The translations under genes were made by a program, and so were the position numbers. A stretch of 64,000 nt of DNA, taken from assembly GCF_000315625.1 (NCBI RefSeq), contig NW_005434673.1:978828-1042827 (forward strand). The letters run 5' to 3'. The DNA is from Guillardia theta CCMP2712. Lineage: Eukaryota > Protista > Cryptophyta. Position 1 is the first letter of the stretch; each line of letters begins with the position of its first letter. Under the pieces are notes generated by a model. The model had not been told where the DNA came from and made no database searches. It saw only the letters and a list, made by a program, of their open reading frames with translations. Below are positions 5,599-58,787 of the stretch, one piece after another.

Positions 5599-5902
5599 CA
5601 GCAACGCTACCTTCAACCAGCCCCGTCATCCGCCCTTCTCTTTTCTCTCGTGTATATTCTTTGATCTTCGACCCTCATTCACGCTCGATGAAATTCTTTC
5701 TACACTTTAATCATTCAAACGTAAAAGTACATGATAGAAAACTGTCTCCCGTCGGAAAACTGTCCTCCTCCTCCTCCCCCTCCTCCCCCTCCTCCCCCTC
5801 CTCCCCCTCCTCCCCTCCTGCTACACCTTCTCGCCTCGCCCTCCTCTTCATTCACCAGCCCACTGACACCCCACACCCTTCCACCTTCGCCTCTGACTTC
5901 CG

Positions 5903-6793: not shown

Positions 6794-6842
<49 letters not shown>

Positions 6843-8697
6843 AACAGGAGTGATATGTATAGAAAACGAACCAATCGATTCCTTCACAGCATCAGAAGAA
6901 TTCTGGACATCCCCTTCGGGAACTGGGACCAAATCTCTCTGCATCTCTGCAAGATACGCAGCTTTCCTCGTCTCCTCCTATACAGCACAAGGTCAGCATC
7001 TCGGGTAGCAAAATCGTTCAGTTCCTCGACCTCGGCTTTCTCCTTGGCAGACAGATTTGTAAAGATGACCCCGACGAAGAGAATCAAAACCCCCAAGATG
7101 AACATGACCCAGTTTTGCACTGAGAAGTTCACCATTTCCTGCCAACAGAATGACGATGCTGTGTTTGCAAGATTGAACAGTGCAAACCTCGTAGAAGATG
7201 GCTCCAGTTATGATGCTCCCAACATTCCAGAAAACATAAAAGTTGGGGATGTGATACAGTGCATCATTCACGGAAAGGCTCTTGTTGATCAAGAACAATT
7301 GTGACGGAAGTGAAATACAGAAGACAACTATGATCACGGCAACAAACGGGTCTGTGAACTGATTGCTTCCAGTAATTGAAGGAATGATTAGACCAGAGAA
7401 AGCCTTGCCGAACAAAACTGTGAAATCTGCCACAAAAGATGCAACGATGCAATAGACAGCTCCAATCCTCTGCGAATTGGCAGGCAAAAACAGTCAGAGG
7501 CACAGGGGCACAACACATGAAACAGCTGATTACCGTGGATGGTCTTTCAATTGCTTCATTTTTTGATCTGGCTTCGTTCCTTCGCTTTACGTAGTCCATC
7601 CGCATGATGATGAAGCAAGCACCAATCAAACTTGCGAGAATGCAGAGCATAACTTTAACATTGGTCTTTTTGTACTGATTCACCAGAATCTCGATGGACC
7701 AATCAATCTGATTCTTCTCACTCCCAAAGACCGTCAAGAGAATTCCGCAGATGATAATCAATGACGACATGTAATCTTTCTTGCTTGTGTGCTCTCGCAG
7801 AATAAACTTGGCAGTGAGCGTGTTCACCTGAATATTCAAGTCCGTTGGTGACTCTGAAAATTGAAGCAGAAACAACTTACCACAAGCGCCCAGCTTCCAA
7901 CTAGAGTCACAACAGATTGCTTTGATATCCCAAGAGCCAAGAAGTCAAACAAATTGCCAATGGCAAAAATGCAAAATCCCAGCAACCAAGTCCACGGAAC
8001 CTGAAATACATAAAATCGATAAGATGAAATTTTGCTTTCTACAGCATTAGAGTCGACCTCTTGGAGTAAAGATGCTGGGCAGCAACAACAAGGCCATGTT
8101 CCGGATAGCCTATGAGGAATGCGGTTAAGGAGCAGGACTCAGCATCCAAACATGTCACCTCGGTATCTCTTCGACGTGTGCGCTGTCTTCCAACGGGCCA
8201 GAGGATGCATGTCTACGAATCTCGTGTCAACCTTCAGCCATTTGCACGCATGGAAAGATTTACATCTCTGCTATCTCGTTCTTCACAAAGTCGTGGCCGG
8301 AGGCAGGGGAAACATTCTTTGGGTCCTTGGATCCGTTCGAGACCTCGTCTTGCCTCTCATCACCATTCTCGCTGTTCACACTGTGAGAGGGCGTGTACGA
8401 GTGTGCAGGCTCTGCAGCAAGATCATGGTCTTCGATCTCCGAGGTTGCAGGGTGAGTTGTCATCGCATTTGTTGCTTGTTCCCCGCTGTTCTGTAGCCGT
8501 TTGAGACTCTCCTTTTTCTCTGTCATTCTTTCTCTCTCCGCTTTTTCCTTGCGGATGTGATGCAGCTTCCAGAGGGACAAGCCAAGGGCCTCCAGAGTGG
8601 ATCCGAGCAATGCCAGGAGAACGCCATAGAGATAGCATTCATTGCATCCCCCTGAACTGCTCGTGCTCGTTGTGTTGGTAATGGCTGGTTCCGTCAT
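5903..8697 (-). CDS. NIPA-family (DMT) Mg2+ transporter-like membrane protein, multi-exon
   Basis: TM1 YGVLLALLGSTLEALGLSLWK; VNTLTAKFILREH; QLFLINKSL..DALYHIPNFYVFWNVGSIITGAIFYE; final TM MFILGVLILFVGVIF; long disordered C-tail. Confidence 0.8.
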
Positions 8698-11101
8698 TTC
8701 GTTGTTAAGGTTTGAAACAATCACACGAAACGAGTAGGAAGTTCAGTCGAGTAGAAGACTTTCTTGCTTCTTCCATGGCCTACAAGATCTTGCTGGGTGA
8801 ATCTCCTCGAGCTCGAATCTGGTGTGCCGGAAGGAGCTCTCAAAATTACTGTCTATCAGACAAAAAGTTAAAAATACACATCAGACTTGAAAACCAATGA
8901 ACATGGAAACATCACTGAGCTGAAATCTGATTCAAGAAAGGTTGGAAAACATCGACATCACACTTGCTCAACTCAAATTGAATAAGGCAGTCAGGATGAT
9001 ATGCCATCGGAAAATTCAAGTCCACAAAATCAGTATCACATCAACTGTTGCACAATTGTAAATGCACAAGTGTATTCCGTAAACTCTGTGAAGTGAAGCA
9101 TGAAATCACAACAGTGATGGTGGGGGAGGGGAAAAAGAACGAGCACAAGCTTGAGTGTGGACTTGTTAAGTGTTTCATGCTGGATCTGAACATCAACTCA
9201 ACTCTGATCTGATCGACATCTCGAGGAGATCTCTAAATTGACCACACCAAACCTGTTTCATGAAGACAATCTCACCTTCTCTTCCCCTTCTTCTTCATCG
9301 CGCCCACCAGCTCGCTCCATTTGCAGGAGGAAGGACCATTGGGAAGGTTTGCGGAAGGGGAATAAAGGGGGTACCCCATTGGTGGGTTAGCACGGGTGGG
9401 TTTGAAAAATAGGGTGGGGTACCAGGGTGGGGCGCTTGCGGCAGAAGAGGAGTTGGGGGTAGGGTAGTAGACTAGGAGGGTGACACAACGGGTACCAGGG
9501 AACAAAGATTGCACAGAAATGCACGGGTACTGGAGAGGAAATGGGGGTAGGGACTATGGCGGGTAGGGTAATGGACCCCACTGGGATCAACCAGAAAATG
9601 CAGTTCGTGAGTTTCATTTGTGGTGGGGGTAGTGGGAATACGGGTAGGGGTGATGTGTTAAGTTCAAACACAGGAGGTGGGTACTTGAAGGAACTCGGTG
9701 GGGAAAAGGGTGGGGTGGGTGTTCTGGGGGGAAAGGGACAAGGAACTGGGGAGTTGGCCCGGGTGGGGGAAAAAATGCTGAAAGGTCGACAGATCAGATT
9801 TGGGTGGGTAGGGTGGGGGGTAAAGGAGGGGTACAGACTGGGCATTTTGAAAGTTGAACTTTGGAACAGAGGGTAGTAGCCAACGGGGGTAGTGGAGGGG
9901 TGGGGGTAGCTGAGCCGGGCTGCACAGCATGAGCTGTTCGAAGAATCCACTACAATGTGACAGGGTGGGGTAGTTCAGATTACGTGTTGACACTATGTAG
10001 GTACCGGTGGTAGTGCAGAGTGCGCCGGATGTGAGGACCCGGGTGGTAGAGGGAGAAAAAGACCCGTGCACGAAGATGAAGTGGTGTTAGAGATAGGGTG
10101 GGGTAGCTGATCAGTTTTCAACTTTTCTGGCATGGGGTCGTGACTTGGGGGTTGTCGCTCTGAGAGTGATGGGCTCCAAGAATATTTAGAAACTTTCTCT
10201 ATAATTTTGAAATCTGAGAATAATCTTTGGAATAGAATACAGGTTTTCCGAAGTTCAGTCGCCGTCGCTCGCCGAGTGTCACCCGGAGTCGGACAGCCGG
10301 GCCGGGCGGGCCTCCGAGTCCGGGCCGCGCCCGCGGCCGACAAACCAGTAAAGAAGGATCTTGAGATCCATTGCACTTTGTACCAAGAATAATTAAGTAG
10401 CAGCTTTTTCCATTTTAAAAGGGAACAATGGTACACATTATAGATACAAAAAATCCTTTTTTCGTATCTATGTAAAATATCTTGGTAACATGAGACTATC
10501 TGAAGATTCATTTTAGGTACAAATTGCATTATACAATGATTATACGGAAGCTGGTTCCGTCATAGAACCTTTGTACCGTAGTTTTTAAAAACTCAAAAAT
10601 GTGACAAAAATGGTTGTAAACCATGGGCGCTTGAGAGCTGGCGTGAGAGGAGAGAGGAGAGTGGAGCATGGAACAGGGAGCAGGGAGCAGGGAGCAGGGA
10701 GGAGCAGGACAGCATTGAAAAATGAGGAAGTTCACTTGTAGATTGAGATGGGAGAAAGCCAGCGTTTGGGTTGAGCAAGAGTCTCGGGAAAAGAAAGCAG
10801 ATTAGGCGGGAAAGACAGGGACCTAGTCGGCAGGTTAGGTACGCGCTGGAACGTTTGGGCGCTTTTGAAGTATCAAATAATGCAGACACGTTTATGTAGA
10901 GCAGACGAATATGGACGTGGTGTGGAGGGAAGTAAGCAGGAGGGAAAGAGAGCACAAGTAACGATATAAAACAGTGAAAAATGATGGGGGAGGAACTTAT
11001 AGTGCTTGTCCTAGGCCTCGTCTCGTCACCCTTCCTGCATGATCATTCTGGTCCTATAAATATCCTAGGGATTTTTTATCTCCCATGCTGAATATTCAGA
11101 G

Positions 11102-14100
11102 ATGGACTCGAGGATCCAGCCGCACTCGGCAGGGAGCATGAACGCAGGCGGGCAAGAGGAATTTCAGCACCTAGCGTACCCGTCGACAGAGCTCATGGAG
11201 AAGGAGCCCTGTACCGGCGTCTCTGTGAATGGGAGGAATGAGGGAGCGAAGGGCGAAGGCATGCAGCTCAGGAAGAGAAAACCCTCCCTTGTAGGAAGGA
11301 GGAGTGTATCACCACCGAGGAGAGGAACTTCGAACCGATCGATCTCACAGGAGGAGGAGAATGAAGCGCCCACGCGCCCACGCACTCTCTTCAAGACCTT
11401 CCCCGGCGTCTTTCTCTTCTGCTTCTGGGTGGTTGAGTTTGGGATCCTCGTTCACCTCCTCCCCCTCATCACTCCGTACGATTGTGTGGCTTCCCAGGAG
11501 GCTGAGCAACTGCATGAGGCGCTCAAGAATTCCAAGATTGTGAAAGTGATGATTGCACTCATCTTTGGGATCTGCATCATGTTAGACTTGTCGGGCATTG
11601 TGATCTCCATCAGCCCAAAGAAGAAGCAGTTGAACAGCATGGTGTTGTTCATCAACTCCGTCTCCTTCAGCATTTACATCTCCACCATCTTCGACGTCAT
11701 GCCGACAATCTGCGATGTCAACGGAAAGCCCATCCCGATATTTGTTTATGTGCAGTGGATACACACAACACCTGTCATGATCATAGTTCAGTCTGCTTTG
11801 GGGATGTCCATGGAGGTTCGTGGCTGTTCACGATGCATTCAGATCTGACGCACGCTCAGGAGGATTTTGTGAAGGATTGGAAAGCTGTTTGCTGGACCAT
11901 CTTTTGGGATGAATTGATGATGGTCCTGGGTAATAACATCACAGGTTTCACATGCTTCCATGCTCACGGTTGGACAGGTATCGTCCATACCTTCCTGGAC
12001 CAGCACTGGATAGGGTGGGCAGCTTTCTTTGCCTCCTGTTTGAGCTTCGTGCTAGTTTGCAGAGGAATCCATCATCTGTCAAAAGCAAGGTGATAGAATC
12101 GTCAGCGCAAGTCTCCCGCTAGTCCACCCTCACTCTTGTTTCAGCGCAAACAACGCCGCTACCACCTACGAGATGACGTCGATTCAAGGCCTCGAGATGC
12201 TCACCTACATGCTGTGGTCTGCCTTCCCTTGCATTCATTTCTTGCACTACATGGGTGAGTTTCTATATTGGTCCTACAGAGAGGGAGAGGTGTTCTTACT
12301 GACGTGCAGGATTCATTGACGGCCTGTATTACGAGATCCTTCGCTCATTCGTCGATGTCACGTCGAAGTTGATCTATTCAGGTCAGTGCAGACAGACAGT
12401 GTTGCTCTTCGTGACTCCTTCAATGCTCCAGTTGCTCTGCTCACCGGAAATTTTTGCGTTTTGGATATTGTCGCAACGTTGCGACTAGCACAGGTGAGAA
12501 AAGGGGAACATGGGTGTGGGGATGGCGGAAAAGTAGTAGTTTGAGGTGTGGTCAGAGGAGGGGGAGGAGCAGGAGGAGGCGAAAGATAATCATGAGATTC
12601 CTGCTGCAGGTTCAAGCAGAGAAGGAAAGAGACTCGAAGCATAACGCTGTCGTGCGTGCCGAGGTCTCCTCAGCCTCGATCTTCAGGCATCTGAGCTGCC
12701 ATGCAGGCCATGAATCGAGCGCTTCAGATGGCGTACCTGGAGGCAGAGACTTCAGCCCGCCTCGCCCGTCAGTTCCTCGCCAACATGAGCCATGAGCTTC
12801 GCACTCCCCTCAACGCCGTCATCGCCTTCACTTCCCTCGTCCTCGACTCCCGCGACCTCAGTCCCCTCCATGAAGAGTACCTCTCCTCCTCCTTGACCTC
12901 CGCCGAGGCTCTCCTTGGCATCATCAACCAGGTCCTGGACTTCTCCAAATTTCATGCGCAGGAGGAGGAGGAGGAGGAGGGAGGGGAGGAAGAACGACCC
13001 AAGTCGTCCGACGCTCGGCCCTCGCTAGTTCAGCTCAACATCCAGACGTTCGACCTGCTCAAAATCTGCGACGAGATCTGCGACATTCTGGCAGAGCGAG
13101 TGAACGCGCGCGACGTCGACTTTGCGGTGGAGATCTGTCCACTGCTGCGGGGGGAGAAGGTGCCGAAGCTGCTGGGAGACCCGGTGAGGCTCCGCCAGTG
13201 TCTCGTCAACCTCTGCGACAATGCCGCCAAGTTCTCCAAGGATACGGGGGGTCAGGCCCTCTTGTCCGTCGAGGTGGAGGAAGGAGCCTTCGGCGAGCTG
13301 CTGGTGCTCGCTCAAGTCTGGGACAACGGCGATGGCATCCCCAAGGACAAGCAGCCGCTCCTCTTCGTTCCTTTCTCGCAGGTCCCCCCCCTCACCCCCC
13401 CCCCCCACACACACCAAGCATCTCTGCTGCTGGAGTGTTTGACATGGTACCAGGTGGACTGCAAGTACTCCCGCAAACATGGCGGGACGGGGCTGGGGCT
13501 CGCGATCACCAAGAAGATCGTGGACGCTATGGAAGGTTCGATCGAAGTTTTTAGCGAAGGACCAGACAAAGGGTCCACCTTCACCATGCAGATCTCGTTC
13601 CCCGTCGCCGCCGATGGGGAGGAGGGGCTGCAGCAAGGTTCTCCTCTACGTATGACCAAGCTGAGGTACGATCGTCTCTTTCGCCTCCCCTCTCCCCCTT
13701 TCCCTGTCTCCCTCCTCCTCTCCGTCTCCCTCCCTCCTCTCCACTCTCCCCCTTCTCTCTCCGCTGATCACCCCATCGCAGCGGCTGTGTCAAGGTGCTG
13801 TTGCCCAAGGGTCCCGGCCAAGAGCTCGCGGTCAAACTTTGCGAATCCTGGGGACTGAAGGTGGACAACTTTTGCTACGAGCAAAATGCGGTGCCATCGA
13901 TAGGCAAGATCCGGTCGCTGTTAAACAGCTTCGAGTGGAAGGGAGAAACCAAGGTCGTGCTGCTCATCGACTCCAAGATCCACTCCCTCCTCATCGACGA
14001 GAACATCCAGCTGGCAACTGGCAAGAACATCCTCGTGGTCGGCAGCCTCGACCACCTCTGGGAGCAGATGCAGCGGGTGCGGGTGGATCCTGCTAGGTTC

Positions 14101-15181
14101 CTCCTCCGTCCCATCAAGTCCTCTCTCTTCCGCCACAAGCTGGAGGCTGCTATTGCTCTCTCCAGCACCACAGACTCGCACCTGACCGTAGAGTCCATGC
14201 GCACCTCGTTCTTCAAGGAGGTTCAGTTCGGGACGAGGCTCGACTTCCAGTACGACTCCAGCATGCCCACTCATGTTCTGGTGGTGGAGGTAGGGATTCT
14301 CGTTTCCTCTCACTTGCTCTGCTCTGAGTTTGTTCTCCCTCGCCCTCTTCCTCGTGCTACTCGTGCTGCGTCCTCACCTTCGTCCACGTCCTCCCTCCTC
14401 ACACTGGATGCAGGACAACCCGGTCAATCAGAAAGTTGCGGTCGCGATGGTGCAGAAGACTCTCGGTAAGTGACTTGAGGGGGGGGGGGGGGAGGCAGCG
14501 CATGACGAGGAACATCAGGACGGGAGCATGTGATTGTTGACGTCGCAAACAACGGTGAGCAAGAGTCTCGCCACGTTCGAGTTTTGTGCCTTCCTCGTCC
14601 TCATCCTGTGCCTTGATTCGCATCCCCCTCGTGCTGCACCTTGCTGCCTCCTCGGCCTCCTCTGCCTCCTATTCTCTTTCTCCTGCCATGACGTGCTGCT
14701 CTTCCAGGTCGGGAAGGCTTGGCCAATTCAACAGAGCACGGCCACAAGTGAGTTAGCTGGCAGGGGTGCTGGAGAAACTGACGAGGAGCAGGTACGATCT
14801 TATCCTCATGGACGTCCAGATGCCTGTCATGGACGGCTTGGAGGCCACGAGACGCATCAGGGAGTGGGAGAAGGTGGGTGGAGAGTCTGTGCTAGACCAG
14901 CTCTGACATGGGTGCAGTCGCATGCGGGGGAGGCTCCATACTTCATCGTTGCGGTCACAGCGCATGCCAGCAAGATGCATGTGGAAGAATGCTTAGAAGC
15001 AGGTGAAGTCTTCACTTTACTCCTCTCACCCTGCAGTCTCCTTCCTCTCCCTCCCCTCCCCTGAAGGATCCCCTCAGGAATGAACAGGCACGCGAGCAAA
15101 CCGCTCACCCTCGTGTCGATGAGAAGAGTTGTCGAGGAGTATCGCGATTGGCGCGTCAAGATGTTCAAATCTTGTAAATAG
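11102..15181 (+). CDS. Histidine kinase rhodopsin (microbial rhodopsin + HisKA + HATPase_c + degenerate REC + REC)
   Basis: Spliced exons give helix [15 protein letters not shown], helix [11 protein letters not shown], helix F MLWSAFP and helix [11 protein letters not shown] (Lys at 12366-12368). H-box [11 protein letters not shown]; N-box [10 protein letters not shown]; G1 DNGDGIP; G2 GGTGLGL; receiver [28 protein letters not shown]. Stop TAG at 15179-15181. Confidence 0.92.
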
Positions 15182-15303
15182 CGAAGATTCACCAACATCG
15201 ATATTGTTTCTCTACAAAGAACAGCCCATTCACAAACAAACCTGCCGCCACATTCCTTCCATTTCCTCTGAGCAGGAGCGAGAGAGAGCGAAGGGCGGGG
15301 GCT

Positions 15304-16546
15304 TTAGAGGAGGAAGGAGTCAACGGAATGTCTCCTGGCACCGGCGGTGTCAGGCATGAGGCAGACCAAGGAGCCAGCAGCGAGGGGGGAGAGGTTCAGC
15401 AGGTCGGGGATGAGGTCAGGGTTGAGCCCCTGCAGGGTTGTCATGTTCATCCCGAACCTGCTCGAGAGCCTCGTCCAGGTATCCCCCACCTGCGACAGGT
15501 ACAGATTCCCGAGCCTGATCCTCTGACCGACCAGCAGCTCGTCCGGGGAGAAGAGCTGGCGGTTCGATGACCAGATCTGCGTCCAGTCGGTCTGGTGGCG
15601 GTAGGCGAGGCTCTGGAGGGAATCGGAGGAGGAGATGCAGTAGAAACATTTGTCGACCGAGTACCTCACCTGGGCATACTCGCAGCTCCCTCGCCTCAGC
15701 AGCTCAGCCACGAACGTCCGCGCGTTCCCCGCCATGTCCATCTCAGGCGTCCAGCGGATCTGGAGGGAGTGAACTTTGACGTATCCCCACTCCCTCGCGT
15801 CGATGAACTGATCGCCGTTGGTGTCCAGCAGACTCACGAGCTTGCTGCGCATGTCCTTGCTGTAGTTGAAGGCGCCGGCACGCGAGAACTCCAAGCGGGA
15901 GAGCACGCCATTGCTGTCGGCGTCAAGAAAGGAGACGAGGAGGTAGGGAGAGGAAACTTTCATCATTCTGTAGGCTCTCAGCGCCTCTTGCGCGTCCAGC
16001 ACGCCGTTCCCATCCACATCGAAGGTGTCGAAGATGACAGTGCGATAGATGAAGTCCCCTTGACGGCTCCACTCCTACACCATCAGGTCAGGACCAGCAG
16101 AGTCAGCCCTCAGAGGAAACCTGCTTTGACCGCCTCCCATCCTTGTTCAAGTCCAACTGATTCACAAGGTCATAGCGAATGGCGCTGGCGTTGGTCAGGC
16201 CCAGGGCCCTTTCAAACTCCAGCACCTCACTGTAGCTCAGCGAGAAATCGCCATTGAGATCGAAAACATTGAAGAGCACGTCGGAGTATGGCAGAGGGTA
16301 GCTGGACGACGTCGACACGTCAACAATGGAGCCTGGAGGAACCGAGTCCCGTTCGATGCTGTCCATGCTCAAGGTGCTCCATATCATGCTGAAGTTGACT
16401 TGGATCAAGGTCTCGCAGCCGGGCGACGTGAATTCCAGAGAGAGGTTGTAGGGTAGAAGTGGGCATTCAATCAAGGCTGTACAACACCCAATCCATGAAA
16501 TGAACACAATCGCTGCATACCCTATCCTCCCACTCCTTTGCAACAT
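15304..16546 (-). CDS. Secreted protein with five EF-hand loops and two C-terminal LysM domains (2 exons, intron 16075-16120)
   Basis: Hydrophobic N-terminus (YAAIVFISWIGCCTA). EF loops DLNGDFSLSYSE, DLNKDGRRSKQE, DVDGNGVLDAQE, DADSNGVLSRLE, DTNGDQFIDARE. LysM patterns Y.I...DSLQSLA....W..IW..N......L.VGQRI and GDTW..LS.RFG.....LQ.LNP. Confidence 0.82.
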
Positions 16547-17319: not shown

Positions 17320-20300
17320 TCAGAAGAGCCTCCACTCGCCGCATGGGGTGAGGATATTGCAGAGGAGATAGCATTTCCCCGTTGAGTCTCCGCAAGCAAG
17401 GATACCCTGTGGTCAATCAACGTCAGAGCAGCGCGTATCGCTATCTTGACTCACCGTCCGCAAGCTCGTCGCTGACACTGAGCTACAAGCTGACTCGCAT
17501 ATCCACCTTCCCACCTCGAGGAACGTCGAGCTCGAGTAGATGATGACATGCCTGTCCCACGACCCGGTGACGATGTGCCTGTTGCTGGGCGTGAACGTGA
17601 CCTGCGAGACAGTATCGCGATGATCCTCCCAGCACTTCACCAGCCCCCCTCGCAGATCCCACAGTCTGCAGCTCTTGTCAGGAGACCCGGACAGGATGGA
17701 AGATCCGTCGGGACTGAAGCGCACGGAGGTGATAGTCTCCGAGTGGGAGATCAACTTCCGCACCAGCCCCTTCATCCTCGCGTCCCAGACTCGCAAGAAG
17801 TTGTCGTCTCCCCCGCTCACGAAGACGTTGTCGCCAGGGGAGACGCTGCAGCTGCGGACGGCAGCGAGATGCCCCAGGTGAGGAGCAGCCTTGGAAAGCT
17901 CCTTGGCCGACTCCACGTCCCACAGCCTGATCGAGTGATCCAGCGACACTGACACGACTCTCCTGCCGGAGGGAAAGTAGTCTACCTCCAGCACGCTCGC
18001 TTCATGTCCCCTCAGTGCTGCCAACAGACGTCCAGACTGCAGCTCCCAGAACTTGATAGCCTCGTCCTCAGAGGAGGTGATGAAGTGCGAGCCCTCGGGA
18101 TGAAACTTGCACGACGTCAGCGCCCCAGCATGTCCTCTCCTCGGCTCCTCGACTATCTTGGCGTCCCGGAGGCTCCGGAGGGCGTATGAGGTGTCGTCAG
18201 AGGCTGTGATGAAGAAGTCTCCCTTGGGGGAGAAGGCGATGCTGGTCAGGCTGCCGTACTGCTCGAACACTCGCTCACTCCTCTGCGGGCTGACTCCCTC
18301 ACTCCTCTGCGGGCTGACTTCTCCTCCTCCTCGTTGAATCTTCTCCTCCTTCTCCTCCTCATCTCCCTGAGAAGCCTCCCCCTTGGACGCTTTCTTGGCG
18401 GTTGAGTGAGACTGGCTCGGATCGTCGCGCAAGAGCCCCCGCAGGTTCCAAGTGCGGATGGAGCCGTCAGCCCCTGACGACAGCGCCACGTACTCGTCTA
18501 TCGACACCGCGACGCCGTAGACAGGCCCCTGGTGCCCGGCGAACTCGAACAAGGAGAAGTCCACCAGGGGGTCCCACACCCTCACCGTCGCGTCGTAGGA
18601 GGTGGAGAGGATGTAGAGACCCGAGGGAGTGTAAGTCAGGGCCAGCACTGGCCCCTTGTGCCCCTCCAGCTGCCGCTCAACTGAGCAGTCTGACAGCTTC
18701 CAGATCAAAATCTTGCAGTCGTCGCCGCTCGACGCGAACTGATCGGGAAACCTTGGGTTAAAGCAGAGGGCCCGCAGGCCGTTGGAGTGACCTCGCAGGA
18801 CGTTGTTTGGCTGCCTGATCTCCTTCACGTTGTCGTCGAAGGACGAGAACTTCCAGGTCATGATGACAGCGTCGGATCCAGCTGAGAAGATCCAGGCGCC
18901 GTCGTTGGAGAAGCAGCAGGCTCTGACCCCCAGCTGGTGCGAGAAGAGCACGTGGGTCTCGCGGAAGGTGAGGGCGTCGAACACGTGGATGGTTGCCTTC
19001 TGTGTACCGGCGATGATGGTGTTCCCGTCGGGGCTGAACTTGCAGCAGGTGGCAGGAGACTCGACGTAAAGGTTGGCGAGCTCGATGCCGGACTGGATCT
19101 CCCAGAGCTTGACGGAAGTGTCGATGGAGGCCGTGATCATCCTCAGCCCGTTGGAGGAGATGTCAATGGCTGTGATCGCGCTCCTGTGCCCCCGCAGCTC
19201 ATGCACGCAGGCTCCGCTCTCCATGGTCCAGAACTTAGCGATGCTGTCGTCAGCTACCGATACGACGTACCTCCCGTCATGCGTGACAGCGAGCGCTCGG
19301 ATCCACCCCTTGTGCCCTCGGATGGTGCGCAGAAGAAGCATGGCCTCCTCACTGACTTTGATCTGCTTTAGCCAGTTCTGCCCCTCCCACCCGAAGCAGA
19401 CGTGCTGAAACGCCAGCTGGCTGACCAGTGAGCTGGAGGGCTCGTTGATCATAGTCTGGACTAGGAGCTGGGGGAATTGGAGCAGGGTCTCTGCTGAGGC
19501 CGTGAAGAAGCGCTGGAGCTGGAGGAGGCTGGAGGAGGTGGACAGGAGGTCGCCCTCGAACTGAGACTGAGGTGAGTGGATGAAGCTGAGAGTCACGAGC
19601 AAGTCGCTGCAGTACTCGTGCACCCTCCCTGTGAGGACGCAGAGTCGGATGAAGCTGAAGGACATAAGGATCTTGGTGGCCTCCTGGTACCGCTGAGCAT
19701 GGAGAAGGTGAGTTATGAGCGAGTTGGCTGCCCGATAGTCGTTCCCTGTCCAGGTGAGGGCGAGCTCCGGGTCTAACCTCGCCCAGAAGTAGGAGGAGAG
19801 CTTGTGATTGAAGGCTACCTTGACCGCTGGGTCCTGGAGGCCGTAACGCCTCGTCAAGAGCTGGACGAGCTTGCGGGAGGAGAACTGAAGAGTCTGGCTG
19901 TCGGCCTCCTTGAAGAAGAGAAGAGGGAGCAGGAAGTACTTCATGGACAGCCAGAGGGTCGTCGGAAGGATCTTGAGCTTTGTTGCGCTCCCACCTCCCG
20001 CACCTGCGATCGGCGACTCGATGGACTCGAGCCTCCTCTCCTCCAGCTGCTCCTCCAGCTGCTCCCGGGCATAGTCCTGCGCCACTATCATCCTGATCTC
20101 CGTTTCTGTCAGGCCGTACACAGACGCGATCATCAAGTTGACAACGTTCTTGCACAGCTGGGCACCGCAGAAGGTCTCTGCGCTCTGGAAGTAGAAGTCA
20201 CACAACCCTTCGAATGAAGGAGGCAGAACGCTGATGAAATCGTCCGCGTGCTTGAGATGCTGATCGAAGTCCAAGACCATGCTCCCGACCACCTTGAGGT

Positions 20301-23300
20301 AATCGGGCCAGTGCGACTCGGCTCTCTGCACGATGAGGCTCACTTGCTCCATGCTGAGTCGCTTGCTGCTGTGTCGCACCAGACAACTCAAGACTTCCTT
20401 GCGGTCAAACACGTCGAGGGGGTTGACTTGAAAGAAGACAACGGACAACCTCTGGTTGCTAGCGACTGCCTTTCGGATCATGCCGGCATGCGACATGGCG
20501 AAGATGAACTTGAAGCTCTGAGGGAGGCGGACGGGCAGCCAGTCGAACCGCAAGCCCTCGATCCTCTCAGGGCTGTCCAGGACTATCAAGACCTTCTTCT
20601 TGGGATGAAACTCGTCGACAAAGTGGCAGAGGTTGAGAAACTTGAGCCTGAGCAGGTTGTACTCCGAAGGGATCGGCAGCAGCTGCGAGGGATTCTGAGG
20701 AGGAAGCTTGGGGGAGTAGAGCTGCTTTGGGTGGGTGTATCCGCAACCCTCCAGCACCTGGGAGAGTCGCTGCAACAGGATGTAGAGAAAATACCTGACG
20801 GTGATCCTGCGGGAGGATACGGAGAAGTAAAAGCTCAAGACTATCGGATTGTCCCAGGAAGCCCCTCGCTCTCCCAAGTCGACTCTGCTCTTGCTCAACT
20901 GACGAATGCCTGTGTTGGAGTTGTTCTCTACCACCACCTGCTCTTCCAGCATTCTCTCCAACATCGCCATGAGCTTCGATTTGCCACAACCAGCCTCTCC
21001 TTGCACTATCAGCAACGAGTTTGCGTCGGGATCCGACACATGTTTCCGCAGCCGATCTAGGAACTCGTACCTTGCAGCGTATTTCTGGCTCTCATACTCA
21101 CCGAACCTCTCGAACCTCTCACATTCGTACTCAATGTTCTTCATCGGCCTCTCAAGGCAGCGCTGTAGAACTCCGGAGGATCGCAATGTTGCAAGGATGT
21201 CATCAGCAACTCGATTCCCAAAGTCTTCTAGCCCATCCAGCAGCACCCTCCCTTCCCCGTCCAGCCCGTTGTAGAAGCAAGGGTAGTCCTTGTAGACGGT
21301 CCCCTCAACCAGCAAGAGATCCTTGAGGTCTTGCAGCCGCTGCCGCATCGCCAGGTCCATGGAGGTATGGCGATCTCTTAGGCTAAGGAAGGGAAGTTCA
21401 GTCAGAAGTTTTCTCTTGTTACGGTCATCTCTCTTCATCACGTTGCGCAACGACTTGGGTGTCTTCTTGATCTGAAGGAGGAGCGAACCCTTCTCGTGCT
21501 CTCCCAGTGCTAGATTCAATGTTGTTGTAACTAGGGGAGAGATGTTGTCGAGATTGATCTCGGCCGTTCCTATCACCTTCCTTCCTCCGAAGATCTTTGT
21601 CGTGCAAGCCTGCAACGTGATAGTTTGATTCTCAACCTCCTCATTGTACAAGAGCCTGAACGACTCGTCGAAGAAACTGTTCTCACTTCCTCTTGTCTTC
21701 GTCTTCACCTTTTGATAGTCCAACTCCATTTCAACCCACACTGGCTGCCCTTGAATCCCCGTCTCCTCTATCTGATCGTCTTGTATGTACAACTTCTCGA
21801 TAAGTCGCACTCTCTTCAGCACGCTTTCTCCCTCCTTCAACGCTGACAGCCCTTGCTCTGTTTGCATCCCCATCAGCTCGTTCACGATTCCCTCGGGGCT
21901 CTTCGCAGCCTCCTCCCCGCTTGGCTGGTAGACATCGGGCTCGACTTGGAGCTCGAGGAGAAGAGCCCCGGGCTTGAGCTTCTTGGCCAGCTTCAAGTAG
22001 GAGGTGGGAGTCAGCCCAAGGGTCTTCCATGCTTTCTTCGTCCTGCCGTCCTGCAAGCTCTTGACGACCAGGCGCGACTTGAGGACGGAGAGGGAGGAAG
22101 CTATCTCATGGAGGATCTGTTCCTGCAGGTCCTCCCTGGCTGCCTTCCTCTTCTCGCCGCGCCCGATCACCGACCGGGTATCGTATTCCAGCAGCAGGAA
22201 GCACCACGTCCTGTACGCGTCTAGCTGGTCCTCTTGGATTCTCAGCACCTGGCTGCTCACAAAGCCACCGGCCTGCGCAGTCGTCTTGTGCGACAACTCC
22301 AGCCATCTCTCTCTCTCCACGTTCTGCCGCAGCGCCCAGGCCTGAGCTGCGTGTAGCGCCTGCACCCACAGATCCCTCGACTTCTTGTCCTTCGCTCGGA
22401 ACCTTAACTTCCTCAACGACTTTGTGTTGCCGAGAGGTTTTTCGAGGAGCTTGCCGATCATCATGACCTCGTCAAGTCGACGGCCTGTGACGTTTGCGAG
22501 GATGAAGTCTCGTTCTCCCTCCTTCGACACCTGCCAGCTCCACAAGTCAATCGTCGAGTGCTCAGGCTTGTCAGGAGGATCATTCTCCACCATGTACTCC
22601 ACCACAGCGAATCCCTGGAAATCCAACGAATTCTTCAGCTCCTCCAGTTGACCTTCGCTTGCTCCTTCTTGTTCAAAGTCCCACAAGACTTTCCCTGAGA
22701 TCTTTTCAACAACTCTCTCCGTGTACCCATCCTCGTCCTCAAACTCTTCGATCAGCTTGTCTTGAAACAGATACACACTCCGCAGCTCTACCACAGTCTT
22801 TCCAACAACGCTAGCATGCCGAGCTATCGTGTCGTACTTCACGTAATCCTTGTCGAGATCCACCGTCCAGAAAACTTCCTTTGACTTGAGGTGAACAAGG
22901 GAGATTGGCTGTCCGTCAGGGTGATCTAAGTTCCTGAAGGAGCCTTTCAACCCGTACCTCTCGTTTCTTATCTCTACCACGACCGTCTCCAGCCTCTTTG
23001 TCATCACCAGCTCATTGCTCAACATCACTGCGCCCTGAAGAAGCTCATCCAAGAAGGTCCTAGTATCAATCTCATCCTGCCACACCACTTGGCTCGTCCT
23101 GTAGTCCCTCATGATGACTGGATCCCCTGACAAGCTTCGCTGCAACGCAAAGATTTGCTGGTTGATATGATGATACTCCACCAAAGTCTTGTCCTCCACA
23201 TTCCTCCTTGACGGGACTCGTGCCGGTGCCAGCGGCTCGTCGACGAACTCGATCGGCTCAGTCATGATGTCGTCTCCTATGGAGGAGCTCCCCGCATCTT

Positions 23301-26300
23301 CCCCTCCTGACTTGCCCTGGGAGCCGAAATTTCCACCGGCAGTCTCAAGATGGACTGAGCTCAGGTCTTGACCTCTCGCTTGTCCTCCTTCTTTCCCTCC
23401 TTGGTTCTCTTGCTCCTTCCCTACGGCATTCCCCCCTTCGCGACCTCCAGCCTGATCAGTGTCTCCCTCGTTTTCCTCTCCTTCCCCCTTGCTCCCTATC
23501 CCATCTTGCGGGTTGCTCTCTGCTGGCTCGACGAGGTTTTGACCCTCTTCCTCGTCCTCCTCATCTTCATCTCGCAGCTTCAGCACGTCATTCTCGTCAA
23601 CATTTACAGGCTCTGCGAAACGATCTTGACCCAAGTCTGATGAGTTTGAGCTTTGATCGTCTAGAACTTTTGAGCTTGCCGTGTCTTTTCTCTCGAGGAG
23701 TTTTTGTTCAGTGACCTCAACAGCACTCCTCTGAAATTCCTCCCACACAGAGCCATCTTCATCGTTCTTGACATTCCACAACTCACCTTTGTCATAGTAA
23801 TCACATATTTGCTTCGGGATTCCAAATTGATCGACAACGAGGTAGCAAGGTTTGTTGTCCCAGAAGTAGAACTTGGCGATTCTTGAGTTGTTGACAAAAT
23901 CTGCTTGTCTTTGACCTCTATCTATCAGCATGTTCAGATGCTGCAAGATAGAGGCGTCAGACGATGGCTGCCAGAGTTGGAGAGCAGCAAAGAGACTTGG
24001 CAGGTTCACATCCTCCGACCATTCCTGGCGCAAAAACAGCATTAGGAGGAGAGGGATGGAGCAACAACAGCACGGCCTTACCCCATCGGCTTCACAGACC
24101 TCTTGGACCCTGAAAGAAAGCAGGATGCACTGAAGCGGCAGCTCTTGGTTTGAGACGAGACCTGGGAGTATGAGAGACAGGTTGCTTTCTTCATCTATTT
24201 GCCTGTCTTGTTGATTCTCTGACAAGAACTTTCCCTCCATGATGTCTCTGACTACTTCAGGAAGGAGGACCTTCTCGTTCTCATGGTAGAGCACCTCGAG
24301 GGGAGGGAACTTGTTCTTGAGCTCTAGCAGATACTCCTGCCACTGATCGCGCAGCGCCCTTGACTTGGCCAACAACTTGAACTCGGGCTTGTCTGGTTCG
24401 ATCCCAAGGTGGTTCCACTTGAAGACAAGGAACAAGGAGAACCCTTCGGGGTTGTGATCTCCAAAGACTAGTTCCCCGTCTTCACTCTCAACATCGTACG
24501 ACAGCAGGTTGAAATGTCCGTACCCCTTGATGCTCAACATGGGATACTCCCCGCTTCCATCCGCCAGGCAATCCCGGGCTATCCATTTCGTCCCCAGCAA
24601 GGAGCTTTCTCGCAAGGTAGCAAACCGATCGCTTCTCGTCAGCTCAAACTCCGCCTGCTGCGTCTGCTCATCTTCTTCCAAAGTCTCGTCCTCTTCCAAG
24701 ATGTCTTCGGCGGTCAAGTCTGACCTTACCGAGCTCTTCCTGCTCAACAGGCTTGCATGACTGCTGCGCAACGAGGTCATCGATCGTTTCCTCGTCGAGG
24801 ATCTTCGGTACACCTTGTGCTCTATAGCCCCCTTCACCGCTCCTCGAGCCTTTGAAGTATTCTCCCACTCCTCAATCATGGTCCTCGTCCTCTGCTGGAT
24901 GTTCTCGTTGGATATCATCTCGACCAGCTCATTTAGGCCCATGAAAGCATCGATGCAACGTTTGAACATGTCGACCTTCCCGCTGAGAGCCTCTGCACGG
25001 CTCGCATCATCATGCACATACTCGAAGTAGCTTCTCATCTCCTCGCATGTCCACCACTTCCCCCGGTACACATTGTGTATGGCCTCCACCTTGACAGAAT
25101 CAGCAGCGCCCTTCCTTTGCAGGCGGGAGAGGTCGACGAGCAGTTCCTTCCGTTGGTTCTCTGCCGGGCGCAACTTCTTGATCCTCGGGCCCGAGTCCTC
25201 TTGCGTCATTTCACTGACTTCACTGTCATCATCGAAATCTTCATCATCGTCCTCATCATCCTCCTCATCATCCTCCTCATCATCGTCCTCATCCTCCTCC
25301 TCTACCTCTTTCTTCTCCTTTTCTGGCTGTTTCTTCGCTTCCTGGGCTGGTTCCTTTGCACTTGCTGCATCCATTTTCGGCTTTTTGGTCCTTGTGTCCT
25401 TGACCACTTTCGGTTGAGCCTCTTTCCTGGCAACGCTCTCTGATTTCATCTCGCCTTCCTTGTCTTCATCAACAACATTCATCCTCTCTGCATCATTGAA
25501 ATCCTCTTCTCCTTCAATCTTGTGAATTGCGTCTGATGTCAGGAAAAACTTCTTCCTATCTCTTCTCGTGATTGTCTTGTAGGTCATCCTTGCGGCCTTG
25601 AGCGGACCAATCAGAGGGAACAACACGGCTCCTCCTAACAGAGCAACGCTCCCCATGAGCACTTTAGACAGTCCCTTGACAGCAAGCATCGGGAGGTTCG
25701 TCGACGCTTTAGATGTCAGTCGACCGCCCTGGCGGGTCTGGCCTTGACCTGCCGCCAGCTCATCCTGCAAGTCCTGACCGAACAAGTCGATTCCTTGAAA
25801 GACGTGAATGTCCACATACGCTGAGTTTGATTTCACGGGCCCAAGGCTGCGAGCTATCAACTCCATCTCATGCTCATTCTGAGCCTGCACGAGCTCTTTC
25901 TCCTCCCTCGCCTTCTTCTGCGCCAAGAGCATCGCCTGCTGCAGCTGCATGTCCGTCAAGAACGCGGGGTCTTGCATCCAGGCGTTGTTGCGCAGGTAGA
26001 AGAGACTGTAACTCCCTTGTTTCGCGGTTCCACTGCGCGATCGAGCTGCTTGCATCCTCTTCCTGATGAAGGCGTGTACGATCTCGAGATGTACCAGAGA
26101 CATGTTTTCTGGCATCTCTCGAATCCAGTTGAACCTGTCATGCTCAAGATCTCCGTAGTCTCTGTAATATGCATCAGGCTGCCAGCCGTAACTGTCACCC
26201 AAGAGGTTCAGGAAGTAAGGGAAGCAGTTGTCAATCTCATCAAGATGAAACTTGAGCGCTCGTTTGTGATAGCACTCTGACTTGGAGACAGCATGCCTCA

Positions 26301-29300
26301 GGTCCACAGGGATGAAATGAGCTCGGAAGTCATGGAGGTATTCGTTCAGGGCAGGGAAGATTTCAGAGTGCAGGAAGTCTCTTTCCGGCTTCATATCATC
26401 CCAGTCACTGCTGATGTAGAAATGAATGGCCTTGTAGCCGACCTGGTCCGAGTCTTCCAGCCTCTTGCCCTTGACGTCTTCGGGGATATAAATGTCGTTC
26501 ATGTCCACTTGAAGGCTCATCATCTTCCCGTGCACGGGGCCCTTGAGCGCGATGTCATCGATGACTCTCAGCATCTCGCACTTGGCGAGTTTGTCGGCTG
26601 AGCTCAACTTGCACAGGCGAACGAACCTGCGAGCAAGCGCCTCTGGTTTCCAGACATCTTTTCCCATCATGTCGTCAAGGAAGAATATCTCAGCGACGCC
26701 TTCTAGGAGGTCGAACTTGTTCAAACTGATTCGGCTCTCAGGCAGATCAAGCAGGAAGGAGACCTCAGACCGCAGTTGCTGCATGGCGAACTTGCTCTCA
26801 GCTATCAAGCTCCGCCCTGGTTCGTTCTCTTCCTCCTCCTTGAGAAACTTGACCTCTACCGAGTAAGGAGCATGGCGCGAGCCTTGAGGCAGCCTCTTGT
26901 GCCGCGCAAGCTTGGTCAGGTCCTTGGAAACAATGGCCCTCCGCAAGCGCTTCTTGTTGATCTGAACGAGCTTCTCTCGCTCGAAATCAACATCCCAGTG
27001 CTTTCTTCTCATTATCTCCGCCGAATGCTCTTTTTCCCTCACGATCTGTCGCTTCAACATCGCTTTGAACCTCGGAAAGTGCTTGGCATAGCAGGTGTCG
27101 CCGTATTCCTTCACGGTCTTGCTCCCCCAGTGGTGATACCAGAAGTGATCGAGGTGGCATTGAATCGGCTTCGACAAGATCGAGAAAGGCTCTCCGCACT
27201 CTGCGCACCTGCCAGACATGTTCCTACTCTTTCTGAGATTGTTTTCTACCAGTTCTCGACGCAATTCACTCGCATAGTTTTGGTCATAAACTCTGCGCTT
27301 CTCCTGCTCAGCTTTCCACTCCAAATCAAGCTTGCTCAGGTGAGACTCTTCTCTCTCTTGCTCCATCCGTGAAGAGGTCGACTCGTACTCCAGTACAACT
27401 CCTGAAGACCCCAGGGAGTGACGACGTTGAAGTTTGTACATAACCTTTGACTTCTTCATCCCGATCGACACGTCAGTGAAAGGCGTGTCCAAAGAAAGCG
27501 ATTTGCTCCTCTTTCTCTGAGATACGTGAAACTCCGGCAGAGTCTTTATCCGCATCTCTACGCACAACTCACCAACGGGATCAGATTCTGCAAGGTTGTA
27601 CAGCAAGAGATTTTGAAGGACCTTGATGTTTGGTTTCAATTCTTTGAATGCAAAAGAGGCATTTCCAATCAAAGCGTTTGTTCTGATCAAGTCATAGTCC
27701 AGGACATCAAAACGAACAATGTCTTGTTTGTCCAACGAGTGAGCTTCAAACTCGAAGGACTCGTTGAAGTTCGGGTAGTTAGTCTTGAATCTGATTCCTG
27801 TCTTCAAGATCCTCTCCTTGAACTCTACACTGACAAACGAATCGCAAAGCTGTTTGGTACCGAGAGGCTTCAACTCTTTCGCTGACAAGATCTTGACAGT
27901 GAAGATGGTGTCGGGAGGAAGGTCAGTTGGCTTCGGGACCAGAGATATCTCCAGGTATACTTCACCCTGGTATTCCGGGTGCAGGTAGTCCTTCAAAGGA
28001 TACCACTTGCAAACTGTTTCTCCTACACTGAAGCCCAGGAGGTCGATATCCACTCGTCCGCACGAGTCGTCTTTAGATCCGAAGTCATGATCGAAGCATT
28101 CGATGCCCAACGACGTGTCCATGGTACTCGAGCTTGTCGGGAAGACAAGGATTTCGTTCCAGCGAGGGTGCAGAGTCTTGAAGATGGTTGAAGTCTTCTT
28201 TGTCTGACCCTCGAACCTGGCGATCACGTACGGGTCTGAAGTGCCGCCCCAGTCGAGAGCCGGGAGGTTCCTCGCTTCCGAGACTCGAATCCGAAGCTGA
28301 GAATCTGTATCTTGCTCGCTGAGCTTCTTGCGAATGGAGATCTGGATCTTTACCTCCGCTCTAGAATCGGGCAACTGGAAGTTTTCCAGGAGCAACCATC
28401 TCTCGTGCAGGTAGTTCAAGGGGAAGTCCAACAGGTTGAGAGCAGAAGTTCCAATCATCACATCCTTCCTCCATTCCATGTGGTCCATTCCTGTAACGAC
28501 CAACGCACTGTCCAGCCGATCTTCGAACCCCTCGAAAACAAACGATTCGTTCCACTCAGGTCTGCTGTACAACCCCTGCTTGAATCGGACCTTGGTCTTC
28601 TGCACCCTCCCCTCGAACTCTACTTTGAAGTAGGGGTCACATGAATCACTCCTCGCCCTCGGAGGCAGCTTCCTGGCCTCCAGGATGGTAACGCGGATGA
28701 TGGTATCGAAGTCTTTTAACTCCCTCATCTTCTTGAGGCTGACCTGGACGTTGATCCTGCCGTAGAAGTCTACCTCCTCGTTCCTCCTCCTCTTCACCTG
28801 ACTCGGGTCCCCGTCCTTGCTGAACTTCTGCAAGTCGTGCCATGTTCCACTCCCAACCCCGGCAAGGTTCTCATTCATCAGGTTGATTCGGCAGCTGCCA
28901 ATCAAGATGTCTCCCAGGATGTTCTGGTGGAAGCAGTGGATCTCAACAAAGTCGTTGCTCACACTTGAGCTCTGTGCTGGGAACTCAAAGATCTGCCTCC
29001 ACATTGGCTCTAGAGTGCGCGACTTGACATCCGTCTTGAAGACTTGGCTCTTGTACTTGACGATGGCGTAGGAGTCGACAAATCCGTGGAAGCCCAACAC
29101 GGGAAACTCTTGTCCCTGGATCAGATGCACAGACAGCAGGGAGTCCGGCTCGACCGGCTTTCTCTTCTCGAAGCACAAGGACACCTCCACCTCAGCTCGG
29201 ACCTGAGGATCCGAAGGGTCCAGTATGATGTACCATGACACGATGGGCTCGGAGTCCAACACCATCTTGGAGATGTTGATGTTGCAGCCTCCCATGTACT

Positions 29301-29911
29301 GAGGGTCGTCCTCCTCCTCCCAGTCCCAGCACTGCAGCTGCAGCTCTTTCGTGTCTTGGATCTGATTTTCCTCATTGACGGTCCACACCGGGAACTCGAG
29401 CGTCTGGTTCCATTGAGGAGCGAGAGTTCTCATCCTCACTTCCGTCTTGAGGTCTCGTGCTCCCAGCCTGAACAGCAGGTACCTGCAGACACGTCGGGTC
29501 AACAGGAACAAGGTCGGTGACTGCGGAGGCTGCTCACGGATCGCTGAGCCCATCTTCATTGCGAGCAGGAAGATTTCTTGCTTGGATGGCAACAATGCTC
29601 AAGACCTTTTGCAATCAGCTCAGAGAGGTAGAGGCAGAAACTCAGTGCAAGGCTCACATATGGTGAGTCCGCGTCCGGATCGATAGGCTCTTCTTCGCCC
29701 TCCTTCTTCTGCTTCTGCCAGGATCGCTTTGAGCTTTTACGTCGCAGCAGGACGAGGGAGGCAGGACAAGGCAAGACCAACAACAGGCAAAGATGAGGGA
29801 AGATAAGGGGAGGGGAGGAGAGGTCAGGGAAGGGGAGGTCAGGGGGAGACTGTCATGTACCTTCCTGCGGAAGACCGAGGAGAGGGCGGGAAGGGAAGCA
29901 CCTCCCCCCAT
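17320..29911 (-). CDS. Giant STAND NTPase: 5 tandem C2 + Zn-finger-like + DUF4062 + (split C2, PH-like insert) + NACHT-like ATPase + WD40 repeats (TEP1/NWD-like C-terminal half)
   Basis: 12-kb ORF 17413-29595 plus small 5' exons (MGGGASLPALSSVFRRK / KQKKEGEEEPIDPDADSPY / VLSIVAIQARNLPARNEDGLSDP) and a 3' exon 17320-17406 (GILACGDSTGKCYLL). Walker A GEAGCGKS at ~20977-21000, Walker B VLIVLD. DUF4062 FYISSDWDDMKPERDFL..LGDSYGW..SLVHLEI. Many GH..WD repeats. Confidence 0.88.
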
Positions 29912-30329
29912 CTCGCCTACGGCATTGCTACCGCTATCGCCCCGCCGTCGGAGTGAGGCAGACCCGCGAAATGAGAACGGGACTGTAAAAGAAAGAAAGA
30001 CAAAAAAGAACGGACCCGTTGTATTCCAACAGTTGAACTTCACGTGTAAGTTGAGGAATCACTTGTAAGTGCTTGAACTTCTTTACTTGTAAGTAGTTTA
30101 GACTTGCACCTGCTACTTGCGAATGGTGGTCATAAGGCTGGTAACGGTTACTAGGATTGCAGTTTCGAGTGCTCCGGTCATTTAGGTTAGGGTTTAGGTT
30201 TTAGAGGCGCCTCTACCTTTGTATCATATCTGTTCAGGACAAAATTCGTCGAATTCTACTTGTGACTTGACCGCAACAGCCTAACTGTTGAGCTTCGGAA
30301 GATTCAAAGAGTGTGAGTTACGATTTAAG

Positions 30330-58590: not shown

Positions 58591-58787
58591 CACTCCCCCT
58601 AGCGCAGGAGGTCTGACTGGAACCTCTCCTACGGATCCTCCTCCTCCTCCTCCTCCTCCTCTCTCTGCTCCCCATTCCCGCAATCCTCCTCTTCCCCAGT
58701 CAAGCGCCTGCATTCGATAACGACCAGTTGGACTACCCCTACAAGGTCCTGAAGATACCCCACCATTATACTTACAGAATACCCCTA

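Follow-up and report, generated by a model that had tools for sequence, protein, structure and literature searches.

A cryptophyte gene placing a tandem C2 array ahead of an NLR-like NIR-NACHT-WD40 protein with a putative, split NADase fold

The nuclear genome of the cryptophyte Guillardia theta CCMP2712 carries, within a 64,000-nucleotide stretch (RefSeq assembly GCF_000315625.1, contig NW_005434673.1, positions 978,828 to 1,042,827; hereafter the window), a very long reverse-strand coding span whose predicted product combines C2 domains, a DUF4062 (NIR) domain, a NACHT-type STAND NTPase, and WD40 repeats. The locus raises the question of whether such an assembly is one gene and, if so, whether its product could be an NLR-like enzyme that acts on NAD+ at a membrane. 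An earlier note, made from the DNA letters, had proposed a membrane-recruited, Ca2+-gated sensor-effector. We find that positions 29911-17413 are one real, expressed nuclear gene with a single mRNA. In its product, a myristoylation motif, a polybasic patch, five C2 domains, a Cys/His patch, the NIR domain, the NACHT domain, helical domains, and two WD40 propellers follow each other in that order. Sequence comparisons indicate that ~1,530 amino acids (aa) are inserted into the NIR fold, in the loop that joins strand D to helix D. Whether the protein acts as a STAND switch that is tethered to a membrane, clusters an NAD+-hydrolyzing enzyme (NADase), and so cleaves NAD(P)+ is, in our judgment, an evenly balanced question.

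Most of the gene is carried by an uninterrupted exon of 12.2 kb. The open reading frame (ORF) list and the translations gave 4,060 stop-free codons in a single frame (29595-17413, reverse strand). The start codon is the ATG at 29911, the first in-frame ATG downstream of an in-frame stop, and spliced transcript contigs confirm this position. When transcriptome contigs from four runs were aligned to positions 24150-30149, three GT..AG junctions appeared near the 5′ end in two independent contig sets, X2 and X5. Short introns upstream of the long ORF break the reading frame of the first C2 domain. One X2 transcript contig is 12,317 nt long and aligned without gaps from 29587 to 24150 except for the spliced intron 3 (5,383 letters used). 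It extends further and, if it stays on the gene, would end ~200-250 nt past the stop codon.

Neighboring C2 and NACHT-WD40 genes might instead have been read through as one. Prokaryote-style gene calling did split the homologue on a metagenome scaffold, L001, into four ORFs, and we found no database protein of matching length. The single stop-free frame and the 12.3-kb transcript contig speak against such an artefact, as do two halves of a single NIR fold that flank the supposed boundary and a parts order that recurs in L001 and in a transcript of Hanusia phi. On these grounds, we rejected a two-gene fusion, to which we assign a very small probability, and the earlier note was right to treat the span as a single gene.

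The Hanusia transcript peptide (P0011) is the closest named relative. Hanusia phi is a cryptophyte of the Geminigeraceae, and its peptide is colinear with aa 2049-3756 of the window protein, with 72.6% identity and no gap of at least 8 residues. A word search with the NIR region returned two metagenome proteins whose C2 array and first NIR part are ~41% identical to those of the window protein; all further matches were generic DUF4062-NACHT-TPR/WD40 proteins without C2 domains. One of the two lies on L001 (17.8 kb), where the homologue (positions 3586-16211, forward strand; ENA ERZ19035773) is colinear with the whole protein, including the insert within the NIR fold. The NACHT region retrieved only the Hanusia protein (74%) and two distant metagenome proteins. 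When the insert was searched with HMMER against 1.84 billion representative proteins, only 19 matches reached E ≤0.001. Besides the Hanusia protein, these comprised a handful of metagenome proteins in which the parts stand in the same order, and short proteins that have a single domain in common with it. All relatives detected come from cryptophytes or from a small number of metagenome contigs, and the family appears to be small and mostly restricted to cryptophytes.

The L001 homologue also bears on the gene model. Its frame breaks (7986/8301, 9455/9469, and 14433/14493) are probably introns and are placed unlike those of the window gene, except that 9455/9469 falls at the site of candidate intron 4. 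This candidate would encode 19 residues that are missing from all homologues. In hydrophobicity they rank second among the stretches of the protein, an odd property for coding sequence at that place. Three 31-mers sampled from the candidate were present in the genome-sized contig sets X1, X3, X4, X6, and X7 and absent from the transcriptome-like sets X2, X5, X8, X9, X11, and X12, of which X2 and X5 contain the flanking exon. Since three sampled words are weak evidence, we grade 24081-24025 as a probable fourth intron. The protein is thus ~4,070 aa long, namely 4,062 aa with the candidate spliced out and 4,081 aa with it retained.

Does the NIR domain have the makings of an enzyme? Two preprints of 2026 (bioRxiv 10.64898/2026.05.01.722283 and 10.64898/2026.09.04.749371) describe DUF4062/NIR as a TIR-like NADase with which bacterial defense systems deplete NAD+ on activation. 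They report that human TEP1 hydrolyzes both NAD+ and NADP+ through E1008, with an activity that rises with protein concentration; the catalytic Glu of PsAvs2 is E108. The TIR-like effector fold claimed in the earlier note is thus borne out, and so is its conserved Glu. The N-terminal part of the window NIR matched positions 2-129 of the solved TIR-like chain of human TEP1 (11gz_A) with an E value of 8.9e-15, and Glu1192 occupies the place of the TEP1 catalytic residue. We also built a NIR profile from nine ordinary, contiguous NIR-NACHT proteins; its positions 7-176 matched aa 1076-1258 with 106 bits. Across seven NIR sequences, among them the C2-armed homologues P0002 and P0003, Glu1192 and a further 12 NIR positions do not vary, and TEP1 R954 is kept in the window protein.

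The remainder of the fold lies far downstream. For the stretch YPCFYNGLDGEGRVLLDGLEDFGNRV, the top PDB match was again TEP1 11gz_A, at positions 160-211 (E 0.0096), and positions 160-211 of our own profile matched aa 2767-2826 (E 2e-5). This stretch is nearly identical in Hanusia P0011 and recognizable in the metagenome protein P0012. Fish TEP1 gave the same picture, in that its residues 837-989 align with the first NIR part and its residues 1021-1606 with the second part, the NACHT domain, and the helical domains. Because both flanks match one PDB chain, fish TEP1, and our own profile while standing ~1,530 aa apart, we read the NIR domain as split. The DUF4062-NACHT-WD40 architecture of TEP1 and the NWD proteins, as named in the earlier note, therefore holds for the parts, with TEP1 as the closest characterized protein, but not for their compact adjacency. 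A survey preprint on NIR remarks that eukaryotic DUF4062 domains "often contain large insertions"; its main text is without cryptophytes and gives NIR as rare (9%) in Archaeplastida, a separate lineage of algae and plants. A multi-domain insert of ~1,530 aa goes well beyond that remark.

The NACHT region aligns colinearly with fish TEP1 over 675 aa (E 1e-7), and we assign it to the NACHT domains because of this alignment, as Pfam thresholds are not reached. HTH_NWD1 and APAF1_C gave weak Pfam matches in the window protein, and APAF1_C lies above its cutoff in P0012 (26.3 versus 22.8). Walker A (GEAGCGKS, 21000-20977) and Walker B (VLIVLD, within 20595-20566), both named earlier, are intact; their three G residues, the K, and the D do not vary among six sequences. 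Pfam accepts ten WD40 repeats, which form two propeller-sized blocks, consistent with the two propellers' worth of repeats first seen. The charged linker before propeller 2 holds a 24-nt repeat (18269-18332) in a tandem repeat scan. Fungal-style hypervariable WD40 repeats were also considered and rejected, as the repeat scan found no high-identity DNA repeats.

What would bring this protein to a membrane? Its N-terminus reads MGGGASL, then RRKKQKK, and fits the myristoylation consensus of Met-Gly, a small residue at position 6, and no Pro at position 7; homologue P0003 begins MGAGASS and so keeps the MGxxxS start. Pfam detected five C2 domains in the first 760 residues of the ORF and a sixth far downstream, with 295.9 bits in total. 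The five tandem C2 domains described earlier are thus confirmed with nearly the same boundaries (29605-27538), although the protein has six rather than five, the last of them within the insert. The array is colinear in P0002 and P0003 (40-43% identity). As the earlier note had seen, one domain carries a full set of Ca2+ ligands. This is C2-4, in which the loops LDWGGTSDPY (28257-28228) and FDHDFGSKDD (28095-28066) supply five Asp residues, namely one in LDWGG, one in SDPY, and the D-x-D and DD of the second loop. All five are kept in both homologues that cover the region, P0002 and P0003; by eye, the other C2 domains are without part of the ligand set. The nearest solved relatives of C2-4 are C2 domains of dysferlin, myoferlin, and synaptotagmin-1/7 (E 1e-18 to 9e-23).

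Three conserved patches follow the array. The RRHSLGSSG motif resembles a basophilic kinase site, and one might conjecture a role for phosphorylation there. In the CxxC/His-rich patch, which is indeed present, only the C-x2-C, one His, and one Cys are invariant; it has no Pfam match and is possibly a small zinc site. The small GKDxWxPE domain before NIR likewise had no family match in Pfam. Coordinates of all features are collected in Table 1.

Table 1. Features of the window gene and its product (nucleotide positions in the window; residue numbers of the 4,081-aa form)
Feature	Position (nt)	Strand	Residues (aa)	Basis or remark
Whole coding span	17413-29911	-		ATG 29911, stop 17413-17415; spliced coding sequence without internal stop
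Exon 1	29861-29911	-		Encodes MGGGASLPALSSVFRRK: N-myristoylation consensus (Gly2, Ser6), polybasic patch begins; joint 29861/29714 in X2, X5
Intron 1	29715-29860	-		146 nt, GT..AG; spliced out in X2, X5 contigs
Exon 2	29658-29714	-		Encodes KQKKEGEEEPIDPDADSPY, finishing polybasic RRKKQKK
Intron 2	29606-29657	-		52 nt, GT..AG; transcript contigs
Exon 3	29538-29605	-		Encodes first strand and loop 1 of C2-1 (VLSIVAIQARNLPARNEDGLSDP)
Intron 3	29483-29537	-		55 nt, GT..AG, phase 2; transcript contigs
C2-1 to C2-5, tandem	27538-29605	-		Pfam C2, five stretches, 286 bits; span takes in intron 3
C2-4	27931-28299	-		Five-aspartate Ca2+ ligand set complete
RRHSLGSSG motif	27400-27426	-		Between C2 array and Cys/His patch; invariant in three-sequence alignment
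Zinc-finger-like patch	27079-27207	-		C-x2-C, His (WYH), Cys (TCY) invariant in window protein and two homologues
Small conserved domain before NIR, GKDxWxPE motif	26536-26865	-		Conservation in three-sequence alignment
NIR N-terminal part, strand A to strand D	25951-26436	-	1075-1236	
Glu1192	26083-26085	-	1192	Pairs with 11gz_A position 115 = catalytic E1008 of human TEP1
Insert	21361-25950	-	1237-2766	~1,530 aa, between strand D and helix D
Long helix, then conserved strand YVDIHVFQGIDL		-	From 1237; strand 1281-1292	Sequence comparison
Glycine-rich hydrophobic segment	25591-25695	-	1322-1356	Peak aa 1333-1351
Acidic and basic disordered linkers		-	~1385-1500	Composition
Asp/Glu run in disordered linker	25225-25302	-		Composition; 12-nt tandem repeat
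Helical repeat-like domain		-	1500-1604	Generic matches only
PH-like domain 1	24307-24648	-	~1671-1784	Weak
Candidate intron 4	24025-24081	-		57 nt, GTAAGG..CAG, pyrimidine-rich tail, in frame, stop-free
~62-aa unit, fourth copy	~23683-23877	-	1926-1994	
~62-aa unit, three copies	22615-23190	-	2157-2348	Four strands and a helix, conserved Trp; AlphaFold2 pLDDT ~90
PH-fold domain 2, long C-terminal helix	22288-22572	-	2363-2457	
Small alpha/beta sandwich	21859-22218	-	2481-2628	Like ferredoxin, SEA, TRADD-N folds
Sixth C2	21457-21819	-	~2614-2734	Pfam C2 27.5 bits versus cutoff 22
NIR C-terminal part: helix D, beta hairpin, helix E (YPCFYNGLDGEGRVLLDGLEDFGNRV)	21181-21360	-	2767-2826	
NACHT-type STAND NTPase, winged-helix and helical domains	19339-21081	-		Fish TEP1 alignment, weak Pfam
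WD40 propeller 1	18436-19323	-		Pfam WD40 and propeller models
WD40 propeller 2	17530-18258	-		Pfam; preceded by charged linker

The insert, which is colinear in L001 and Hanusia P0011, contains several modules of the kinds that bind lipids. For PH-like domain 1, the L001 counterpart matched Pfam PH at E 0.006, which is under the cutoff; since a PDB search with a two-sequence profile gave no significant match, we call this domain only probable. PH-fold domain 2 is a model-based assignment, with VIA-align Z scores of 5.1-6.1 to many PH domains, including those of GEP100, Akt, ARAP3, and Grp1. The sixth C2 gave Z scores of 5.5-6 to C2 structures. Its first strands are poorly modeled; there is a local candidate for the first strand at aa 2617-2623, where the model is weak. 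The small alpha/beta sandwich scored 7.0-7.9 in VIA-align, a common fold that is not diagnostic. Homology of aa 2481-2628 to TRADD-N (Z 7.2) was rejected, as SEA, RRM, and further alpha/beta sandwiches of common type match equally well.

Other portions of the insert gave less to go by. The AlphaFold2 model of aa 1500-2000 was poor (pLDDT 46.9), with a generic helical repeat (Z ≤8) and one beta4-alpha unit as its usable parts. Single-domain proteins with the ~62-aa unit occur in the cryptophyte Baffinella frigidus (KAJ1472906.1) and in metagenomes. Fold searches with this beta-rich repeat gave no clear match, and a protein-language-model search pointed only weakly to PQQ-type propeller repeats, at a level too low to be reliable; the same kind of search with the DUF4062 region returned nothing usable. 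Foldseek found no match in the PDB at E ≤0.001 for the model of aa 2140-2770, and an ESM Atlas shape search gave TM scores of only ~0.2.

The insert also holds the only strongly hydrophobic segment of the protein, in an internal position. At aa 1333-1351 lies the most hydrophobic 19-mer of all 4,081 residues (Kyte-Doolittle mean 2.13), and its counterpart is the top scorer in P0002 too. Gly/Ala-rich stretches are kept in P0002 and P0003, though they are not alignable. The segment may act on the membrane or serve as a re-entrant anchor. Surrounded as it is by membrane-binding modules, it might even enter and perturb a docked membrane, making the membrane itself the target and NIR secondary or regulatory. 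This is one short segment with no match to a pore-forming family in Pfam; it sits in a poorly conserved, partly disordered stretch and might just as well lie buried in the core or anchor the protein in re-entrant form. We therefore consider an attack on the membrane improbable.

Three features outside the gene were noted in the window. A short telomere-like run (aaacctaaaccctaacctaaa) lies on the reverse strand at ~30175-30205, ~270 nt upstream of the start codon. The gene just downstream (15307-16017, reverse strand) encodes EF-hand motifs and a LysM domain, both with Pfam support. At 57361-62678 (reverse strand), ORFs with alpha-glucan water dikinase domains (Ig-like N-terminal, phosphohistidine, and ATP-binding) point to starch metabolism and fit an algal nuclear genome.

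How might these parts work together? By analogy with TEP1 and the bacterial systems, the reading to which we give even chances would run as follows. Membrane attachment would come from the lipid anchor and basic patch together with the C2 and PH modules, and the Ca2+-competent C2-4 would make this binding calcium-responsive. The WD40 propellers would bind a ligand, upon which the NACHT domain could exchange its nucleotide and oligomerize. Oligomerization would gather the NIR domains, and the clustered domains would hydrolyze NAD+ or NADP+ through Glu1192, as in human TEP1 and bacterial Avs2-NIR. Located as it is within the NIR fold, the lipid-binding insert most likely would couple the state of the membrane to assembly of the active site. 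The output could be defense, cell death, or local NAD(P) signaling, and a Ca2+-gated role in immunity or cell death, as first suggested for this locus, seems plausible.

Several observations weigh against a NADase switch of this kind. Pfam scored DUF4062 at 24.6 bits, just below the curated cutoff of 24.7, NACHT at 18.9 (cutoff 26.7), and NPHP3_N at 18.8 (cutoff 24.8). On positions 24150-30149 (6 kb), only seven raw RNA reads were found, from ~6% of run X17. The repeat scan showed no sign of the repeat-driven WD40 diversification seen in some fungal immune NLRs. The protein could instead be a non-enzymatic scaffold, in which the split NIR has lost catalysis, either as an NPHP3-like organizing switch at a membrane or flagellum or as a Ca2+-regulated membrane trafficking or repair factor that acts through the C2 array and uses the NACHT domain only as an assembly switch. 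NPHP3 has a myristoylated MGxxxS start, which the MGGGAS of the window protein and the MGAGAS of its homologue resemble, and the ferlin and synaptotagmin relatives of C2-4 would suit a trafficking role. An insertion of ~1,530 aa that breaks the NIR fold could disable it, and two active-site Arg of TEP1, R908 and R976, are replaced by Asp and Ser. In TEP1, three active-site Arg contact a bound sulphate, and Ala at R908 or R976 lowers activity; no NADase activity was seen in vitro with purified NWD1, NWD2, and NPHP3, all of them DUF4062 carriers (bioRxiv 10.64898/2026.05.01.722283 and 10.64898/2026.09.04.749371).

Two lines of evidence run counter to the scaffold. The catalytic Glu and 12 further NIR positions are unchanged across the seven sequences, and selection appears to act on an intact domain because both NIR halves are conserved among divergent relatives. 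In addition, the parts specific to ferlins (FerA/DysF and a C-terminal membrane anchor) and SMP were all absent from the Pfam scans of the window protein. We regard the scaffold as possible but somewhat unlikely. A bolder version of the NADase switch would place its trigger in the membrane itself. Here, the lipid and Ca2+ cassette inside NIR (hydrophobic hairpin, PH folds, and C2) would let assembly of the NADase be gated directly by damage to the membrane or by rising Ca2+ at the plasma membrane or at that of an organelle. Such a membrane-resident NLR would serve as an alarm, specific to cryptophytes, that responds to viral entry or a breached membrane and ends in local NAD(P)+ collapse or cell death. 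This elaboration is speculative, and we think it unlikely.

The locus matters because NIR was recognized as a TIR-like NADase only in 2026, and the eukaryotic roles of its carriers (TEP1 in vaults, NWD1/2, and NPHP3) are obscure. In the window gene, the NIR-NACHT-WD40 chassis stands behind an unmistakable membrane- and Ca2+-binding arm and carries the most extreme domain insertion documented here in a NIR fold. The gene is a natural test case for whether eukaryotic NIR-NLRs are regulated enzymes, where in the cell they are active, and whether a TIR-like fold can tolerate or even exploit a regulatory insert of 1,500 residues.

Compared with known systems, the protein shares something with each of several families. 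The earlier note knew of no such architecture among characterized proteins. In keeping with this, we found no paper that describes it, and no description of a five-fold C2 array behind a myristoylation signal, of a NIR split by a lipid-binding cassette, or of the combination in cryptophytes. A C2 domain on an NLR-like protein, however, has a precedent in basidiomycetes, whose NLR candidates include a C2 lipid-binding domain N-terminal of NOD/NACHT (Dyrka et al. 2014, PMC4986451). Compared by description, C2 is the N-terminal domain itself in those proteins, whereas the window protein belongs to another lineage and has five C2 domains before NIR. Ferlins, synaptotagmins, and MCTPs share the tandem C2 array, and C2-4, with its full Ca2+ ligands, is closest to dysferlin, myoferlin, and synaptotagmin; unlike them, the window protein has a STAND NTPase and propellers, and we do not count it among ferlin-type proteins.

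Among NIR carriers, NWD1/NWD2 and NPHP3 resemble the window protein in having NIR, NACHT, and then WD40 (NWD1/2) or TPR (NPHP3) repeats, and the weak HTH_NWD1 match is in line with this. They differ in that NIR adjoins NACHT and no C2 array is present, while the window gene is without a tubulin-tyrosine-ligase-like or TPR part. The bacterial NIR effectors (Avs2-NIR, Swarozyc, Vulcan, Vesta, and Evangelion) share the effector fold, the catalytic Glu, and a chassis for sensing and oligomerization. In contrast, they are prokaryotic, compact, and cytosolic, sense phage proteins, and have neither a membrane arm nor an insert.

Vertebrate TEP1 comes closest, with NIR and its catalytic Glu, a NACHT domain, an APAF1-like helical domain, and WD40 propellers, and it provides the best solved match (11gz_A). 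Identity is 21-29%, and the two proteins part ways at the NIR domain, which is contiguous in TEP1, at the two sulphate-binding Arg lost from the window protein, and at the N-terminus, where TEP1 has TROVE and vWA and the window protein has its myristoylation motif and five C2 domains. TROVE and vWA had no match in any Pfam scan of the window protein, and the C2 array holds their position, as the earlier note had stated; because both are absent, we do not regard the window protein as a TEP1 orthologue. With this gene, the cryptophyte lineage joins the record of NLR-like proteins.

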